Below, in pieces: positions 1 to 43,500 of a stretch of DNA of 64,000 nucleotides; position 1 is the stretch's first letter; every line of letters starts with the position of its first letter. The DNA is from Setoptus koraiensis. Its lineage: Eukaryota; Animalia; Arthropoda. The notes below the pieces were generated by a model. That model was not told the DNA's origin and made no database searches. It saw only the letters and a program-made list of their open reading frames with translations. The stretch lies in NCBI GenBank assembly GCA_048013815.1, contig CM106586.1, positions 16,368,001 to 16,432,000 of the forward strand. Reading direction: 5' to 3'. The position numbers and the translations under genes were made by a program.

Positions 1-338
1 GGTCACTTTTACAAACCGATCTATAAATATGGTTATGAAATTATTAACAAACAGACCCACAAGTCATTACTTTCGCAAATCACTGACATTGAAAGTAGAA
101 CACTCAAGTTTCTGAAAAGTTTCTTTCGTGAGCTACAAGAATTGATTACCCTATTTTGAGGCATATAAAGTTTGACAGACATTATCATTATGTGATTCTT
201 CAATTCAATTCAAGTGATTGTTGAATGAGAAATCAAATCAGCATAGAGCAACACCAAAAAGTAGAAAATTCCTAAGAAAAAACTAGATTTTGAAGACGTA
301 GTGCAACTCTCAATCATTAGAAAACTGATTAGATAATC

Positions 339-31574: not shown

Positions 31575-33679
31575 TCAGCCGCGCCTGTAGCCAGATAGAA
31601 GGAGACATATAGAGCACAACCATGTCATAGACTGCGACAAGAAGAGGGACAAATTGAAAAAAGTTACTAATTAGGGATTTGTGACAAGATCACTCGTGGT
31701 GATTTTTCATAGAAGGCCAAGCTTACTTCGATATAGGTAGACCAAGATACGTTGAAGATGTGAAAGGCAGTGTAGCTACACCTGACCGGATGGGTGAACC
31801 AGAAATCTGCTATCGCTTCCCAGATTTTCGCGCTTTTTCCAATAGCAGCTTGGTAACAGATTGTATTCCAAACTAGATAGTTCAGTTTGCCTGACTTTAA
31901 CAGAGATGATGGACAACAATTTACAGGTTAGAATCGGGCATGAGGGAATTGTGTGATGAAGGGTGAGCATACAGTTTTACCTACGATTGCATTCAGAATT
32001 GCGCTACCAGTACAAATGAGAGTCATTACAACGAATGCAATGAACACGCAAAATAGCGCCATGATATTCTTGGGTTTATTCGATGGGGACAATTCGTCTT
32101 TCGTTATCAATATGCTATAACAGAAGGCTAGAATAGACGATCCATTGATGATAGACATGAAGTTGTCGTTGTTCCTAATTTCAGAGAGAAATTCAACTAA
32201 TTCATTTTGCAACGATAGAGTATCAGAAAATAATCGTCCAAGTATGATTGTCCGTTCGCCAACTGTGTAATAAGGATGAGCGCTAGAAATCAATTTGTTC
32301 ACGTAGGAATGATTGTCTGTATCGAAGCCAAAATCTGTTGACTCTCTTGCTTGTTTGGAAATTTCTCGAAGAAGATAATGTTCACTTTCGAGCTTGATTT
32401 GAGGGTTCTCTCTGTCTGATTCGGTCACTTGTTTCATCAAATTACTATAGCCATAGCCGCGCCAAGCAACGAACGATAACTTAGGCCTATCTTGGTTATT
32501 GATCAGTTGATAGCTATCTAGATGACATAAATAATAAGCCGTCTTAGATCTGAGGCTCAATTCTCTCAGTTTCTCTCTCATGCTCTGATACCACACAGCA
32601 ACGTCGTGATGTACCACCAAACCTATCACCCACAGTCCCGTAATGGACAGAGTGAAATCGATTTCTGTGATACATATCTCTATTAAATTAATTATTTTCA
32701 CTGGCAAACTCACAGGATTTTCACATTTTGAATCGAATAATGAATCGAGAAAATTGTTGAGACCGAACAAAGTGATAATGTCTTTAAATTTGCTTATGAA
32801 TAGAGGTGTTATCGTTATGAAGCAGAACATATTCACCATACCGAGGCTCAGGCAGTATGTACATAGAAATATAGTATAATACTTGAGTGCCCTGCTGTAG
32901 TTGACCCATTTGTCTATCGTCCTAGAATTTTGCGATTGATCAACCACAACCAAATTATCCATAATTTCCCTTCTTGACAATTTCTTTTGTCCACTCTGTG
33001 ATATTCTTGATTTACAGCCTAATGTCGCCTGAAACCATTCTCTTCCGTTGAATTGACCTTCCTTTTCATTTGGCATATCTATCTGAGCGGCATTATTACA
33101 GAAATAACAGTTACTCGTTTTGATAAAAGTTGTATACTTTTTCGTTCCGCCCGGTTTATTTTTGGAGCAAGTGCATTCATAATTACTGATGAATATATTG
33201 CGGTCATTGTTTAGCAAAAAATTGAGCACCTTAGGAATTTGATTTTTCCCCGATATGCCCGCATATATGATTGTCAAGCGAACAAATAACAAGAGAAAGT
33301 TACTCAATGCCCCTATTTGGTAAAAAATCTTCCTTTGTGGCCCGAAATATGTCAGTGAATCGCCCAAATAATAGGCCAATTTCTTGTATCGACAATCTTC
33401 CGCAACTGTCAGAGATATCAGGAAATACTTCAACAGTATGTAGGTTGTAATTAGTAGCCACACATATTGATATCTCTTTAAAAGTTTTCTTCTATTGTAT
33501 ACTCCAACACTACTTGAAGGTACATTTGAGAGGTCAAGGAATAGAATTGTGCAAAAAATCATTAGTATTCTTCTGTTTGATCTTGATAGACTGTCAAGCT
33601 CTTGTGCTGTTTGCTGAGCTTCTGTACTAGCCTGTTTAGTACAATCATAGTTGCCACTTCTTTGGGAGCTTCGAAACAT
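31575..33679 (-). CDS. Gustatory-receptor-like 7TM protein (~639 aa); exons 33679-31985, 31894-31727, 31631-31575
   Basis: Multi-TM profile. Phase-0 introns in the same layout as the first GR. Penultimate exon ends YTAFHIFNVSWSTYIE and last exon is SMTWLCSICLLLSGYRRG*, a GR TM7-like region. Confidence 0.72.
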
Positions 33680-34090: not shown

Positions 34091-34529
34091 CCGAATATTC
34101 CCATGATTCTACGGTGCTCGGGACAAAATTTAGAATCTGCGTTCAGATAGAATGGTAAGAATATATGGTGAAATGTGCTCACTATAAAAAAAAATAAATA
34201 AAAAGATAAATGTACTACTACGATGACGCAGTTTCGGTGGCTCTCTTTTTTAACGCGGTTGCAGAATGAACACAACCTGATAACCTGTCGACTAGGTGAG
34301 AAAGCTTTTTGGGTCCAACATTGTAATAAAGAGCAACAATATTTTATTTTGATTGCGTTTGTAATAATAAGATTTAAATTTAAACTTTCAATTTACACTT
34401 TAAGTACAGTCCTATTTACATTCACATATTTTGATTGGCTTAAGTAATTTAGAGAAAAAATTAATAAAAAGGACTCTATTCATTATTTAAATATCTATTA
34501 CTATAGTTGATTTAGTTTGTGTGGGCTTT

Positions 34530-37500
34530 CTAATCTTCGTCCGTCTCTGGAGGACCATAAAGATAAGCTAGTTTTTGAAATCTTGGTCCCCATCTGTTGA
34601 GATAGTCAAAGTTTTGATCTTGCTCGCCTTCGCCAATTGATGCTAATGAGCTTAATGATCCGGCAGTGCTACCGCAACCCTCGTAAGCGTAATTTCTGAG
34701 ATCATCCGAGGGCTGAGATGTTGGATCAAGGTCATCATCGGCATTTATCGCTCTGACTTTAGGATCCATGAGATCAGCTGTTGGGTGGTATTCTTGGGGG
34801 TATCTTGGTCGCATGTCTTTAAGGATACCTGGTTTATTGAATAGTACTTGTTTGCCGCCAGTGGATATTGGCGTTCCGCTGGCATCGACGGGAATTCTTA
34901 GTGGAGTTATGTCATAGGCATGCATGTCGTCTTCTCCTCCACCCTCATCGTCATAGCTAATAATATTCTCGCGAACATCATCGTCGGCGTCGCTTGGCCC
35001 AAACTTTTGATCCAAACGATTACTCCTAGATAAAGTGAATAAAGCTACGAACAGGACTAAATTTTTAAGGGAAAAAGTTTTTGAATTGATTAGTGGTTGT
35101 TGAATAGTGATATAAAAAAGAACTCAATGGTACACACATAGCAACTATAGTACCATCGAGAATTTTAAAACAAGTTTAAAATGAATTGATTTGTTATTAA
35201 TATCTTACGGCTTATTAGTATGCAAATGAGAATCGCCATAATAGCGTTGCCACTTAACGTCAAATTATTTGGCAAAGAACTAAGTATTACTTGAACATCA
35301 CATGTGCAATTGGAACATATTCTATTTTCGGGGGAGGGACAATCACAATAAAAGCCGCCACCATAATCAATATTATGGCAAACACCACCATTACCGCATG
35401 ATTTATCGGTACATTCGTTGTGATCGATACATAGAGGTGCAATATACTCCGGGGCTCTTTTGAGTCCAGGCGGACATCTGGTGATTAGGAGATTTAGGGT
35501 AGTGTGAAATCATAATGTTCAGAAACATGCGTGATTATGCAATATTTGTTAGAGAATAAAATAAATTTGTGAGTAATAAGTAAACGAGGTTAAAAACATA
35601 ATTTTGTGCAAACTTATCAATAACCGATAATACTGGGCTGGGAGTTTAAAGTTTTGAGGTCAGTTAAAGCCAGGGAAGATTTAGTTTTGAAAGAAAGTAC
35701 AGTAAAGATGCAAAGAGAGAACCGCAAATGTCTACTTACTTATAACATTCACTAGAATAACTGCTATGATACCTTGAGCCATCGAACCCATAGAGAGACT
35801 CTTTTCTTGTCTAAGCGCATTACACAAATCTCCAACATATTCCACTGGACACTCACAGTAGAATCCTCGACCATCTTCGAGATTTAAGCATTGCCCCCCA
35901 TTACTGCAGGGATCATTCAGACATTCGTTATCATCTGTACAATTACCATCATCTGTCGGTATCCAACCAGTAGGACACCTTTAGTATAGTACAAATGTTA
36001 TTATAGTAGTGTATGCGAGTAGAGGTGAAATCATGAACAGATAGCGAAAGATATTTAGATGAAGGTAGAGAATGAGAGGGAGAGAGAGAGGATAGTTGTA
36101 GCGAGATAGAAAATAGAAAGATGAACACAGCAGACCCAGCCCGGCAATATTATAAAAGTCATACTTACAGGCACTCAAATTGATTCCAAGTATCAACACA
36201 CACCAACGGTGAAGGACAAGCTGAGCTTTTTGGGTTACAGGAATTGAGTGGATGACAACCGTCTTCTAGATTTCTATATTCAGTGACAGCCGCATTTTCC
36301 GAGCCATTCTCAAGAGGAAGATGCCTTTGGTCTATCCTTATGTCGGATATACAACCTGAATAGCGAGAAAAACCAAGAACTTATCAGTGAAATTCTTCAT
36401 CGTCTGATCTTCTTGTAACGTTCAGTAAACTCGGCAATACTTACTTTCATGAAGTCCATTCTCAACATAATAGGTAGTTGGTCCAATGTAAGAAATATCA
36501 CCTCCTACCGATATACCTTGCTTGTTAACAATAAACAACTGATGGTAGCCTTCGAATTGTGTTGTTTCGTTGTATCTCTTTCCACCACCTCCGTCTAGCA
36601 TTAAGGACGCAGTGCTTCCGAATCTACTTGCTCTGACGGTATGCCACTGACCATCACTGACAATGATATCTTGTAGAGTGAGCTCAATGTCATTGTTAGT
36701 CCTTGTTCGACTATCTAGCTGCATCCTAAAACGAATGCGCCTATCTTTGATTTCGATAATTAAATGTTGATGAGTGCTCTTGCCGGGTATTCTAATCAAC
36801 TCTCCAAGCTTCTGACGTGTTCTAAAGTTCATCTGAATATCAGTTTTGTAAACGTTGGGATCGAATGATAAAGCATAACGCATGTAGCTATTCGATTGAA
36901 ACATCTTAACTGGTGCAGGAGTATCACATCTGGCGCCAGTGTAACCAGGTTTGCATAAGCATGAAGCTGATCGATAATTCGCCTCACACTGACCGTGCTC
37001 GCATTGTTTTGCTACAGCGTCTGCTTGACAACGCTCTAGAGATATTTGGCAAGGTGCTGTGCTCTCGAGAGATCCTCCGGCGGATCCGAGGTCGTACATC
37101 TTAGAGTTATGGATGAGATTTCTGATGCACCCTTTAAAGTGTTCTCGAGTGTGACGATCAACTCGTTTCCAACTGGGAAATGAATCTGCGATACTATCAT
37201 TGTGATATATTCCACCGAGCTGCAACGGCGCATTCAGATTTAAGAATTGATTGTATGGTTCGATTTGAGCTGTTCCTTCGCAATTAGAACGATCCATCCT
37301 GAAGGTGTCATCAGGACTGAAAGAAGCGGTTTCACAATGATCAATGACCATACGGGCTTCCTCTCTAGACCAAAATATGTCAATATGATGCCATTCTCCA
37401 TCATTGATCTCTCGCGCAGCCTCTATATATATTTGAGATGTTCCTGAGCCAAAATCTATTATGAGTTTTGGTTTACCTTGAAACAGTTCTAGAGATATAA

Positions 37501-40500
37501 AATCTTCGACTATCTGAGTGCCCATTAGAGGAGCTGCTATGGGACCGTTATAAAGTATCAAACCATTTGGAGTCTCTGTCATGAATTCCACACTTAAATG
37601 AGAATCTTCACATTGTTCTAGGGGAGGAAACCAGGCCCAACTGCCATCACCAGAGAACGTTCTAGATGTGACTTGACATTGAGGTCCATCAAAACCATCG
37701 GGACATAAACAGGTTGCGATTCGACCTTGCATCACACATCGTCCACCGTTTTGACATATCGAGGGGTAAGCTCTACATCCGATATCTGGATCAACCTCGT
37801 CATAGCTTTTGGCCTTACATCCACACTCAGCCACAATTTTTGAATGAACTCCGACAAAAGATGTTCGGTTAGCATTAACCACATAAGGGTATGGTGCTAT
37901 TTTCAATGTGTTGTAGCAACTTCCATCACACTTGTCATTAGCTTCTATTAGGCATTCGTCTATGTTGACCATGGTGATATTGATTCCTAACTCTTGGGAA
38001 ATTGCGTGAATATTGAGACCTACGTAACCATCTAAGAATGTTGATTTATGGTATGGTGAACCATGTGCTGCGAACCTGACATCCGTTTCCGGTCCAACAC
38101 CCTTCCGGTAAGTTGTCATTACACTAAATATGTCAATATTATCCGTTGACTCTTTCAGAATCTTAGAAAGGGTCTCTCGCAGTTGGTCATACTTGCTTTG
38201 GACTTGTCGTTGAGATTTCCAGTCCCAGACTCTGATAAAATCTTCATCAGTGATACCTGATATTCTGATAGATCCGGAATTATGCACTGCCTCTTCGGGA
38301 AGATTTCGTACGATTACAGTCACATTTGCGGGTACGTCAAGGGTGTGCATCTTGTCTACTACATGAAATCGTAATAAAAATACACCCTCAGTGACATTCT
38401 TCATGATGATGGTACCATTGTTATGCGATAAATCAAAGTTAGGATGTCCTGTATTCTGCCATCGAAACGATTTGTCTGGTAGATCCCAATCGTCAGCGTC
38501 CTCGACATGAACACGACCGATCGGAATATTCCTGTAGTTGGCTCCTTGATAGTTATAGACAAATATAGTTTTACTTCCGGGGTGCATTTTGTTATCGTTG
38601 ATATCTCCGATGACAACTGTAAGAGTGCTAGTTCCCGTCAGCGCACCAGGATCCCGACCAAAATCTTTGACGACGATAGGTATATGATACTCTTTTTGAA
38701 CCTCACGGTCGAAACTCACTTTAGATATTACTGTAGCTGTTCCTTCGGCACCATGACTATTATCATGGTATACTTCAAAGCTAGATTTGATTATATCTGG
38801 TGCAGTTGGATCTAATGAGTAGTGAAAGGGTGGCCCGTTACCAGCTGCTCTATCGTCAGGATCAGTGGCCAGTATACCTTCTAAACGCTGACCGGGTGGT
38901 GAATGTTCCTTGATGACCATCCTATCATCTTTCGATAGTCGAGGTGCATTATCATTGATGTCAGTAACAATGACTGTGAGCGAGGCAGTTGCTGTTTTAG
39001 ATGGAACACCATCATCTATTGCGAATACTTTCACATTGTGTCTACTAAAGGTCTCACGATCAAGCATCCTTTGGATCTTTACGTATCCTCGAAGTTGGTC
39101 GATGGAGAAATGTTTCTCCCTGTCTGACGAGCGATCAATTGCATATCTTACTTTAGATAGTCCTACTTGGTCGGGATCTCTGGCTGTAAAATTTGCCAAC
39201 AATGTCCCTGGTGGGGCGGATTCAGGTACGGATACTTCTATGGCGGGTTGATCAAATACCGGCTTATTGTCATTGATATCTCTCAATTTGACTCGTACTC
39301 TGGCTTGATCGATATGGTTGTTATCTCCAGGTTCACCACCGTGATCATTCACTTCGATTGTCAAGTTGAAACCATACCGCTGATTCGGATCTTCGAAATC
39401 GAGGGGCTTGGCAACCTTTAAAGAACCAGTTCCATCAGTATTAGTAACCATCGTGAATTTATCATGACCACTATCTTTATCGAGAATCCTGTAGGTGAAC
39501 CTGTTAGTCTCCAGAAGATCTCCATCGTTAACGGTGACAACAAGAATAGGTAGTGTTGGCAAATCATCTCCGTCGGTTTCGTCAACCTCCACGCTGAATT
39601 CTTTCTTTGCAAAACTTGGTGGCATGTCATTGATATCCCTGACCTTGATTATAGCTTGCACACTTCCAGCTTGATTCCCTCCATCAGTCGCCGTCACCTT
39701 GATGGAATACTCTGGGTTTGTTTCTCGATCTAGACAACATACAGCCGTTTGTATAACACCAGTATCCTCATCAATCTTAAATATAAGCTCATTATTTTCA
39801 TTAACTTGATTTTGTTCAATAGCATATCTTAGTTTGGCATTTGTGCCTTCATTCGGATCATCGTAATCTATCGCTGACATAGTCATTACTGTTTGGCCTG
39901 CAGTTGCATTCTCAGTGACATTGCCATAATATACGGCGTTCTGAAAAAAAGGTGTATTGTCGTTGATATCCTTGAGGTTGACTAGAACATCCGCATAACC
40001 AACCAAGCCATTTTTACCACCCTCATCCTCAGCATATACCGTGAATCTCCATTGAGGCCTGCCTTGAGGTGCGTCCCTATCTAAAGGCTTCTCTACATAT
40101 ATCTCTCCTGTGGATGAGTTGATAGAGAAGTATTTAGATCCTTTATCTTTCTCTGGCCCTGATTTTGAGTCCTGGTCAGTTCCGAGAAAATAGACAATAT
40201 TCTGTTCCCTATCTCTATCGCCATCAGTGGCAACAACCTAATGAATAAAGGTGATGAAAGTGTTAAGAATATCAGTATCGCCGGTTCTATGCTTGCTTAT
40301 AAATCTAGTATTTGGCATCTGGACTATTTAAAAGGTATCTGACCAAATAAATGTAAGTAAAACTTAAATATTTCGATCAATTAAAATGTATTTTTACCTT
40401 AAGAATTAAGAGGGGTGTTCGGTTTTGTTCTTGAATAGAAGTTACGTATGTCTGTTTCTCAAACTTAGGAGGCAAGTCGTTGACATCTTTGATGCTTATT

Positions 40501-43500
40501 TTGACTTGTGTGCTATTTTCATGCAATCCATCTGACGCAACTAAAGTTAAATAAAACTAATTGAGGCATGTAACGGAGGGGGTTTAATGGATTTGAAATA
40601 AAGGAGGATAATTATAATAAAATATATTAGGTTTTTCATGTCATTCACGCAAGGCGTTTGAAGACAGCTTTCGAAGATCGAGTATTAGTTGAGAATATGA
40701 GTTGAACAGTTCAGAATGAGAGTTAAAATTTAAAGCAAAGTGGTTATAACTAAAGTGGTGTATTGACCGAAACTGAAACATAGCGAGTAAACAAATTGTG
40801 AAAAGGAGGGTCAGATAACCTTTCTATAGCCAATATATCAATATTGACCTGCAGTATCTTTTTGGGTAGATTCTTTTCGTCCCCCTCAACAATAGTAGTT
40901 TGATAGATTGGTCTATCAAAAGTTGGTGGATTGTCGTTGACATCTTTATATTATCAAAGCAAGGAAGATCGATTGAATTATCACTATATTGAATGATTCA
41001 TAGAATTGCTAGCATGATAGAATAGGTTGAGAGTTGTTACCTTTAACTCTTATGACAACTGTTGTGAAGTTTTCATTCAAGTTGTCAGAAGCGACTAGCA
41101 CTAGTTTGTACTAGCATTGAAATAGATAATAGTTGGGTTATATGAGTCGAGTTAGATGAGTTGAGTTAGATGAGTTAAGAATTGATTAGATTAGTTAGGT
41201 TAGAACTTTTCAGCTTGTGAAAGGTGGAATTTATGTTACCTCTTTGCGTAGTTCATAATCGAGTGGTCCCGCAACATAGATGGCTCCTGTTTCATTGTTG
41301 ACTGCAAATGCACCACCACCAATATTACCTTTGGTAATTTCATAGCGCAACTTAGAAGATTCATCTTTGTCTTTAGCCGTTACAGTTATCACAGTATGGT
41401 TTATATCTTCGTCTTCATTTACTTCGGCCTCATATAAAGAACGATCGAAATAAGGAGCGTTGTCATTCTTGTCACCAATACCAATCCTAATGTAGTGGGT
41501 CACTGTAACAAATTAGAAAAGTAATTGAGATTAATGATACACATCAACTAGAAAAAATCCACTCGGAGGAAAAAGTCTGAATAAAGTATCCAGGTACCTG
41601 AGTTGGGAGCCTTGTTTCTTCCTGGATTTATATCGGATGGGGCACCGTCAGTCGCAACAACAGGAATGTTGTATGACTGCCGTTCTTCACGATCGAATTC
41701 TGTTTTTGTGAAGAGCTCGCCTGTTTTTCTATCAACGTCGAAATATTTTGTAGCGTCAAATGCTTCAGGACCTACTTTTCCACGAGGCTTTTCCCAGGGA
41801 GAAATACTGTCTTGTTTTGGTTGTTCCAACTCGTAATAAACGCGATTGTTAGGCGAAGTCCCATCACCATCTATAGCTCGTAATGTTGTAACTTTGGTGC
41901 CAGCAGGCATACCCTCCAGAACTGTTTGTTGTTCTTGCTCGGTAAACCAAGGAATTTCATCATTGACATCAATTATCATAATATGAACGGTACACTCGGA
42001 AGCAAGTTGATGTACTCCATCATTCTCAACACGGACGGTCAAGTTATATGAGGTGACAGATTCATAATCTAAATGCTTGGAAGTTTTGATATCCGCCCAG
42101 AATACAGATCCTTCTTTCCTTGGACTCAAATAGAATGTGCCTTTTTTATTTGTAATTTCTGTTCCACCTTTGAGCAATGTATAATACACAGTTGGGTTGT
42201 CCGGTATACCTGAATGAGCTTTGATGGATATGATAGTATTTCCAATGTTTTCATTTTCTTTCACTCTGACTTCATAGAACGATTGATCCCAACTGGGAGG
42301 GTTCGTACCCATGTCTATAACGCTGATTTTAATAGACACCTGGGCCTTGTTAGGCTGCAAACCTCTGTCCATAGCAATAGCTTCCAGATAATAAGTTTTT
42401 TCAATTAATGCTCTCTTCAGTGTGATCCAACCTGAGTCAGGATTGATTGAAAATGTAGACATTGCAGAGCCTCTACCTTGTAAACTGTAAGTGATAGCAC
42501 CATTGGTGTCCGCGTCTTCATCCGAGGCAGAAACGCGAAGTAATTGAGCACCTACTGGTGTGTCTTGATCAACATTTTCTTGGTACTCCTGTCGATCAAA
42601 TAAAGGTGGATTGTCGTTCGCATCTAGGATTTCAACTTTGAATGAGCACACTCCCTCCATAGGTGGAGTACCACGGTCAACCGCTTTGACTGTTATACTG
42701 ACAAACCTACCATCGTCACCCTCACGATCAAAGACTTTGTTAGATCTGACTTCGCCGGTCAACTCGTCGATAGTGAACTTTGTTCCTTTTTGATTTGGTT
42801 GTTGCACTATAGAATATCTGACCATACCATTATGGCCTTTATCTTGATCGTTTGCTTTGACAGTTATGACACTGGTTCCACTCGCTGCTCCTTCGTAGAT
42901 CTGTGGATTATATTTTTCACAATCCTCAAAAATAGGCTTGTTATCGTTGACGTCTGTGATAAAAACTACAACTAATGCGGAGCTCGTATGAATGATGTTG
43001 TTTCCTTTTTCACAACATTTTCCGTCATCTTTTGCTGTAACATTCAGTTCATACTTGTCTCTGTCTAACTGTATTTGTGCGTTGCTTGATAACCTTATCA
43101 CACCAGTACGCTCATCTATCTGAAACATGGGATGTCTGGGTCCAGGCGCAAATCCGAAGATGATGTTGTCACCGTCTTTGTCACTGGCAACGACTGTTGT
43201 CACAAGTGTTTTAGGCCCAGCATTCTCATCGACGTTAGGTGTATATACATCTTGGCTGAACTTGGGAGCTTCGTCGTTGGTATTTTCCGTGTATATTCTT
43301 ACAGTTGCAGTGCCATTCAACGAGGGAGTACCTTTGTCTCTGGCCCTGACGGTAAGAATGTATGTGTTGTTGACGTCGGCATCTAAACGGCGATTTGTAT
43401 TAATATTGCCGTTTTTGTCTATAATAAATTCGCTTCGATCTATTTCATATTCTATTTCCGCATTTTTACCACTGTCTGCGTCGGTGGCTGATATGTGATA

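Follow-up and report, generated by a model that had tools for sequence, protein, structure and literature searches.

A candidate docking-site and selector helix around a mutually exclusive transmembrane exon of arthropod N-cadherin

What decides which of two alternative membrane-proximal exons is spliced into an N-cadherin messenger RNA? The question is raised by a 64,000-nucleotide (nt) stretch of the Setoptus koraiensis genome (GenBank assembly GCA_048013815.1, contig CM106586.1, positions 16,368,001 to 16,432,000; hereafter 'the window', in whose own coordinates positions are given). Its minus strand carries an N-cadherin (CadN) gene that encodes cadherin repeats, laminin-G and EGF modules and the cytoplasmic domain PF01049. 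A paralogue check found one copy of N-cadherin in the 48.8-Mb genome, and the combination of Cadherin, Laminin_G, EGF and PF01049 domains in one gene is the same in the window and in the related species described below. The three mutually exclusive exon pairs of N-cadherin are conserved across arthropods and regulated by time and tissue, and in the literature that we searched we found no paper on a cis-acting mechanism for the choice of its exons. Here we describe two complementary sequences in the introns on either side of one such exon, and we argue that they probably form a long-range intron-intron helix that steers the choice between exons A and B in N-cadherin pre-mRNA toward B, a reading to which we assign a probability of roughly three in four.

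Alternative exons and complementary intronic arms

The cassette comprises an upstream constitutive exon, alternative exons A and B and the last coding exon, separated by introns that we call I1, I2 and I3 (Table 1). Exons A and B are homologous to one another; each codes for one EGF-like module and also for the first half of the transmembrane (TM) helix. Evidence for their use comes from assembled contigs of two public runs, X5 and X6, over 34530-36500. Neither run carries an RNA label on record, yet the contigs are clearly spliced; they give the presence of joints and no ratios. One joint (35477|36169) connects the upstream exon to B and skips I1, A and I2, another (35056|35740) connects A to the last exon and skips I2, B and I3, and a third (35056|35209) connects B to the last exon. 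Every exon border deduced from the sequence coincides, to the base, with the border in the spliced contigs. The exon model is real, and both the A-containing and the B-containing isoform exist. No joint from A to B occurs among the contigs over this interval. The exon lengths of 239 and 269 nt are both 2 modulo 3, which means that inclusion of both exons, or of neither, breaks the reading frame. This arrangement, together with the alternative use of A and B in the spliced contigs, bears out the initial annotation of the locus, which had called them alternative exons of CadN. It is that of the arthropod N-cadherin pair ME-18a/18b, mutually exclusive membrane-proximal EGF/TM exons that stand directly before the cytoplasmic exon (Hsu et al. 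2009, PMC2655722): the gene and the position are the same, and here too orthologues are closer than paralogues. The ME-18 study differs from the present one in that it covers insect exons and their expression and names no cis-acting RNA structure.

It had also been proposed at the outset that a sequence shortly after the constitutive donor pairs with one in the intron after exon A. Both words are present at the positions given for them. The first, UAAUAUUGCCGGGCUGGG, occupies 36152-36135 (I1 positions 17-34) and begins 16 nt beyond the donor GT (36168); the second, CCCAGCCCAGUAUUA, occupies 35642-35628 (positions 98-112 of the 262-nt I2), and 148 nt separate the I2 arm from the exon B acceptor. 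As claimed, they form a GC-rich core of eight perfect pairs, GGGCUGGG/CCCAGCCC, and, beyond a 3-nt GCC bulge, seven further pairs, one of them G-U (UAAUAUU/AGUAUUA), and they do so within AT-rich introns, with a GC content of 0.37 in I1 and 0.33 in I2. RNAduplex assigns the two words -20.0 kcal/mol, and inclusion of one more flanking nucleotide brings this to -21.8 kcal/mol. Two or three pairing registers of similar energy are available to the AU-rich part, and the 8-bp GC helix is the robust element of the duplex. The duplex does enclose exon A. The same pair of arms is returned independently by an inverted-repeat search, the arms are mutual best partners over 2.2 kb of pre-mRNA, and GGGCTGGG occurs three times in the 64 kb on either strand, two of these occurrences being the arms themselves. 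Next in rank as a partner for the I1 arm is a stretch within the 5' portion of exon B (-19.9 kcal/mol), which pairs with large loops and was judged to be background. An Rfam scan of 34400-36600 at E <= 1 returned no family.

The complementarity is in excess of chance. Our compact-duplex statistic folds every 5-bp Watson-Crick seed with 10 nt on either side, and its controls are dinucleotide shuffles of both introns. The observed value of -21.8 kcal/mol stands against a shuffle mean of -11.6 +/- 2.2 kcal/mol and was reached by 1 of 3000 shuffles; the Gumbel tail is about 0.002. The whole-intron RNAduplex energy did not differ significantly from shuffles (p about 0.39); this measure adds up many weak helices over long loops and was discarded for that reason. 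Between I2 and I3 of the window there is no significant duplex (p = 0.93), nor is there one between I1 and I3 (p = 0.16). A partition function computed over 1365 nt gives the eight core pairs probabilities of 0.86-0.94, although folding predictions at this length are unreliable in either direction.

Pairing across related species

Relatives were obtained from last-exon protein matches (50-68% identity) in Logan and in metagenome proteins, and the corresponding contigs were fetched. Fifteen further species have the full cassette of upstream exon, A, B and last exon with canonical splice sites, and A precedes B in all 15. In a tree built from the exon translations, ten of the relatives form a clade to which the window is sister, and L016, L018 and L023 are the outgroup; L057 and L058 joined the set after the tree and are not in it. 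Conservation in relatives was the test that the initial annotation had named beforehand. Pairing was found at the same place in 11 of the 15 (Table 1), three of them with non-homologous replacement sequences, and this in introns that are otherwise unalignable among these species. The introns of the 11 measure 121-251 nt, and their I1 arms lie 18-64 nt after the donor, starting at 18-45. The same procedure applied to I1 and I3 as a control gave p-values that are roughly uniform among relatives, with the exceptions of L002 (0.015), L010 (0.025) and L018, in which CT/GA microsatellites pair.

Eight relatives have a common core, GAUAAUGC in I1 and GCAUUAUC in I2, with variants in L010 (GAAAAUGC) and L006 (GAUGAUGC). 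Donor and branch-point words aside, the two arms are the only widely shared intronic 7-mers. The window core is a degenerate form: AUAAUAUUGC (36153-36144, I1) is homologous to the relatives' GAUAAUGC, and GUAUUAUC (35633-35626, I2) equals GCAUUAUC at 7 of 8 bases. At helix position k = +5 the G-C pair of the relatives is A-U in the window, both sides having changed, and at k = +6 their C-G is U-G. The helix is extended on the 5' side in L001, L005, L006 and L014, and L006 differs from L005 and L014 by changes on both sides at k = -6 (AU/GC), k = -5 (UA/AU) and k = -4 (CG/UA), so that both-sided changes are seen at four helix positions (k = -6, -5, -4 and +5). Extensions on the 3' side occur in L011 (CAAAUG/CAUUUUG), in L057 (GGUC/GACC) and in the window, where GGGCUGGG/CCCAGCCC is the extension. 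In L058, L009 and L023 the same place is occupied by arms that are complementary to each other and unrelated in sequence to the rest. Pairs were counted by script in the core-anchored register: 69% of cells pair in the true register, and a shift of the partner by 1-3 nt lowers the figure to 25-46%. A MAFFT alignment of I1-exon A-I2 misplaced the window I2 arm and the L005 I1 arm and was dropped for this count. The lineage-specific extensions, the both-sided changes and the unrelated replacement arms together indicate that the pairing itself, beyond a motif, has been maintained in evolution.

A second stem, between I2 and I3, would enclose exon B. Such duplexes are found in L003, L005, L010, L016 and L058 (Table 1), where they were reached by at most 2 of 200 shuffles. 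In L018, (CT)n tracts at I1 73-93 and I2 66-90 are complementary to (GA)n at I3 30-54 (-22 and -27 kcal/mol); this low-complexity pairing may be a mimic of a stem or a working stem. L005, L010 and L058 have both stems, with the arm order Ud-A-Us-Ds-B-Dd. In I2 of these three species, read 5' to 3', the arm of the downstream stem comes first and that of the upstream stem second. With this order the helices would cross, so that only one of them could form at a time unless a pseudoknot is made.

Two side observations belong with these sequences. The sole 7-mer shared in I3 of the relatives is the canonical branch-point word TACTAAC, near the 3' end of the intron in L002, L005, L008, L009, L011, L014 and L057. 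Three loci from the metagenome collection (L019, L021 and L022) consist of the upstream exon, A and the last exon without introns and are spliced A-isoform transcripts of another species.

Table 1. Features of the N-cadherin cassette in the window, and intron-intron duplexes in relatives (intron positions counted within each intron)
Feature	Position	Strand	Energy (kcal/mol)	Details
Very long exon (cadherin repeats, EGF, laminin-G modules)	ends 36445	-
Intron before the 187-nt exon	36444-36356	-		89 nt; spliced joint 36353/36443 (+2)
Upstream constitutive exon	36355-36169	-		187 nt; donor GT 36168-36167; joints 36353/36443 (+2) and 35477/36169
Intron I1	36168-35979	-		190 nt; GC 0.37; GTAAGT...AAAG; from sequence
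Upstream (docking-type) arm, I1	36154-36135	-		15-34 nt after donor; core GGGCUGGG at 36142-36135
Alternative exon A	35978-35740	-		239 nt; translation; joint 35056/35740 in run X5; orthologous exon in all relatives
Intron I2	35739-35478	-		262 nt; GC 0.33; sequence and spliced contigs
Downstream (selector-type) arm, I2	35642-35626	-		98-114 nt after exon A donor; core CCCAGCCC at 35642-35635
Alternative exon B	35477-35209	-		269 nt; paralogous EGF/TM exon; translation; joints 35477/36169 and 35056/35209 in runs X5 and X6
Intron I3	35208-35057	-		152 nt; GC 0.25; sequence and spliced contigs
Last coding exon	35056-34533	-		second half of TM helix and catenin-binding cytoplasmic domain PF01049; stop codon 34532-34530
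I1-I2 duplex, L001	I1 23-43; I2 56-78		-19.4	0/200 shuffles
I1-I2 duplex, L005	I1 23-44; I2 93-115		-20.1	0/200 shuffles
I1-I2 duplex, L006	I1 20-42; I2 78-101		-25.4	0/200 shuffles
I1-I2 duplex, L014	I1 19-41; I2 68-92		-20.8	0/200 shuffles
I1-I2 duplex, L058	I1 36-60; I2 183-207		-31.7	about 23 bp; 0/200 shuffles
I1-I2 duplex, L057	I1 34-52; I2 119-136		-19.7	p 0.005
I1-I2 duplex, L011	I1 26-46; I2 57-78		-17.3	p 0.015
I1-I2 duplex, L008	I1 18-41; I2 75-99		-14.7	p 0.02
I1-I2 duplex, L023	I1 45-64; I2 39-58		-17.2	p 0.025
I1-I2 duplex, L009	I1 28-41; I2 103-116		-15.0	p 0.085
I1-I2 duplex, L010	I1 32-51; I2 about 91-110		-17.3	located by hand via conserved I2 word
I2-I3 duplex, L003	I2 44-58; I3 52-66		-23.3
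I2-I3 duplex, L005	I2 31-55; I3 39-63		-21.2
I2-I3 duplex, L010	I2 20-38; I3 39-56		-21.5
I2-I3 duplex, L016	I2 28-46; I3 115-133		-20.1
I2-I3 duplex, L058	I2 79-98; I3 85-103		-28.3

A proposed mechanism and its known counterparts

We propose that the I1 arm, just past the constitutive 5' splice site, would act as a docking site and the I2 arm, mid-intron between A and B, as a selector. Pairing of the two would leave exon A, together with its splice sites, inside a loop of about 490 nt and would reduce the effective distance between the constitutive donor and the exon B acceptor from 691 nt to about 180 nt. With the helix formed, the choice would be shifted to exon B, as is the case for stem I of the Drosophila serpent gene; with the arms open, the proximal exon A would be used. 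Helix formation in vivo is inferred here, as are the direction of the effect and its magnitude; the preference for exon B is suggested by analogy with serpent stem I (PMC4691838) and Dscam1 exon 6. Since exclusivity is already enforced by the reading frame, the helix would most likely tune the A:B ratio instead of creating exclusivity.

The closest counterpart is the serpent exon 4.1/4.2 cluster, where mutation tests have shown that an upstream stem I promotes the distal exon and a downstream stem II the proximal exon (Yue et al. 2016, PMC4691838), and that inclusion tracks the relative strength of the stems (PMC4691838). Both are two-exon mutually exclusive clusters in which an arm after the constitutive exon pairs upstream of the distal exon and encloses the proximal one, and L005, L010 and L058 add a second stem from the middle to the last intron in the same arm order. 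The differences are that neither the gene nor the arthropod lineage is the same, that the window has the equivalent of stem I only and none of stem II, that its arms are shorter (8 + 7 bp), and that the pairing is predicted here from sequence. Dscam1 exon 6, as presented in PMC3245913 (after Graveley 2005), likewise has a docking element after the constitutive exon and a selector before the chosen exon, with the intervening exon looped out. However, about 48 selectors compete there for one docking site and thereby produce exclusivity, whereas the window has one selector, and the reading frame provides the exclusivity. The downstream docking sites of 14-3-3xi and of Dscam1 exons 4 and 9, as cited in PMC4691838 (Yang et al. 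2011), resemble the I2-I3 stems of the relatives and the pairing at another CadN cluster considered below, but their geometry is opposite to that of the I1-I2 pairing in the window. The mammalian ATE1 exon 7a/7b cluster (PMC7797038) is again a two-exon mutually exclusive cluster with conserved intronic complementary elements. It differs in that two elements compete for a third and that an ultra-long-range helix is present; no such competition was detected in the window. Of the hallmarks of docking-site and selector systems, the locus presents homologous exclusive exons, a docking arm beside the constitutive exon, a complementary selector upstream of exon B and maintained pairing. Competing pairings were not found in the window; in L005, L010 and L058 stems I and II are both present. 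The pairing is very probably a genuine RNA switch and belongs to a known type; for this gene none had been described before.

Full-text literature searches returned no paper that ties CadN or N-cadherin to docking sites, selector sequences or competing RNA structures; the CadN literature describes exons, expression and exonic motifs. The kind of mechanism is well known, and N-cadherin would be an added case of it. If the proposal is correct and extends to insects, the choice between CadN exons 18a and 18b would for the first time have a cis-acting mechanism; in Drosophila the regulation of this choice is undescribed. The locus is compact and testable, with arms of 18 and 15 nt, introns shorter than 300 nt and a cassette of less than 1.4 kb that is of minigene size. 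The relatives, moreover, form a natural experiment, since the same exon pair is found with the upstream stem alone, with the downstream stem alone, with both and with neither. Helix strength can be set against isoform ratio from one species to the next, and such a correlation would test serpent-type bidirectional pairing outside Drosophila and in a second gene. It is conceivable, though on present evidence doubtful, that RNA-pairing control of the TM-exon choice in N-cadherin is an old and evolutionarily plastic arthropod feature. Equally tentative is the picture of that plasticity in which lineages swap a stem around A, a stem around B, or both, and repeatedly replace the sequences concerned.

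A further inverted repeat lies at cluster 1 of the same gene. Its arms (40312-40344 and 40809-40841) are 33 nt long and 73% complementary and flank a cadherin-repeat exon at about 40377-40526. The earlier suggestion that the two clusters show opposite geometry holds descriptively: the cluster-1 repeat encloses the downstream alternative exon, and the pairing at cluster 2, that is around exon A, the upstream one.

Counter-evidence, competing explanations and minor features

Several observations weigh against a helix that steers exon choice. No second selector or competing pairing was found in this genome. In the minimum free energy (MFE) fold of the 1365 nt, the I1 arm pairs locally with the upstream 5' splice site (36172-36161 with 36150-36139), and its energy is lower by 0.4 kcal/mol than that of the best fold with the long-range helix. 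Four of the 15 relatives (L002, L003, L016 and L018) lack an I1-I2 duplex, so the helix is not indispensable, and there is no significant I1-I2 duplex in the distant loci L024 and L026, which have longer introns and approximate exon borders. Finally, the 8-nt core shared among relatives is near-invariant, and this alone cannot separate an RNA helix from a conserved motif.

The local pairing of the I1 arm in the MFE fold, GCCUG...UAAGUAU / AUAUU..CCGGGC, is a possible competing hairpin that would hide the donor; its ensemble weight is only about 6%. Within I2, UUACUUAUUAC (35573-35583, minus strand) is complementary to 5' splice sites: the inverted-repeat search matches it to the donor of exon A (35736-35746; 11 nt, 91%), and it pairs with the donor region of the upstream exon (36175-36158) when the long-range helix is forced.

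The alternative that survives best, although we consider it unlikely, is that the pairing is under selection for another purpose, whether production of a circular RNA from exon A, faster removal of I1-A-I2, or gating of the 5' splice site by a local hairpin. Flanking intronic complementary sequences can promote back-splicing into circular RNA. Inverted complements around a single internal exon, as here, have the geometry of the repeats that do so, and the local MFE fold of the I1 arm onto the upstream donor is likewise in keeping with a function other than exon choice. The arms, however, are far shorter than typical repeats that promote circular RNA, and the contigs over 34530-36500 contain no backward (back-splice) joint, although contigs are a weak test of this as rare forms are dropped. 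The alternation of I1-I2 and I2-I3 stems in relatives, in serpent-type order, fits a role in exon choice better than it fits any of these purposes.

Less probable again is a reading in which the words are conserved as motifs, at the DNA level or for protein binding, and form no RNA helix. Inverted GATA-type DNA sites are the most serious non-RNA rival to the helix, and maintenance of the pairing argues against them. The core holds WGATAR (TGATAA/TTATCA), the GATA-factor consensus, in inverted orientation; GATAA is found in both arms of the eight relatives that share the core; and the 8-nt core GATAATGC/GCATTATC is near-invariant in these eight, an invariance that does not discriminate between the two readings. 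It is difficult, however, to reconcile such motifs with core flanks that are complementary within each species and different between species, or with the window, whose I1 arm has lost GATA (UAUAAU) and gained the adjoining 8-bp GC helix. Nor would a motif account for L058, L009 and L023, whose arms at this place are complementary but of unrelated sequence, or for an orientation that is always inverted and an I1 arm that is always near the donor.

Chance complementarity between AT-rich introns, picked out of a whole 64-kb window, is largely refuted and in our view very improbable: the whole-intron energy is unremarkable, and finding an 8-mer complement in sequences of 190 and 262 nt is not unusual at average composition, but few shuffles match the compact duplex, the GC-rich 8-mer is rare in the window, the arms are mutual best partners, and a same-place duplex recurs in the relatives whereas the I1-I3 control has none of this kind.

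Two minor features complete the description of the locus. The 89-nt intron at 36356-36444 is absent in those relatives with called genes, where the two exons that it separates form a single open frame. Just 3' of the end of N-cadherin, at 31928-33679 on the minus strand, lies an uninterrupted open reading frame of 583 amino acids that is rich in hydrophobic stretches.

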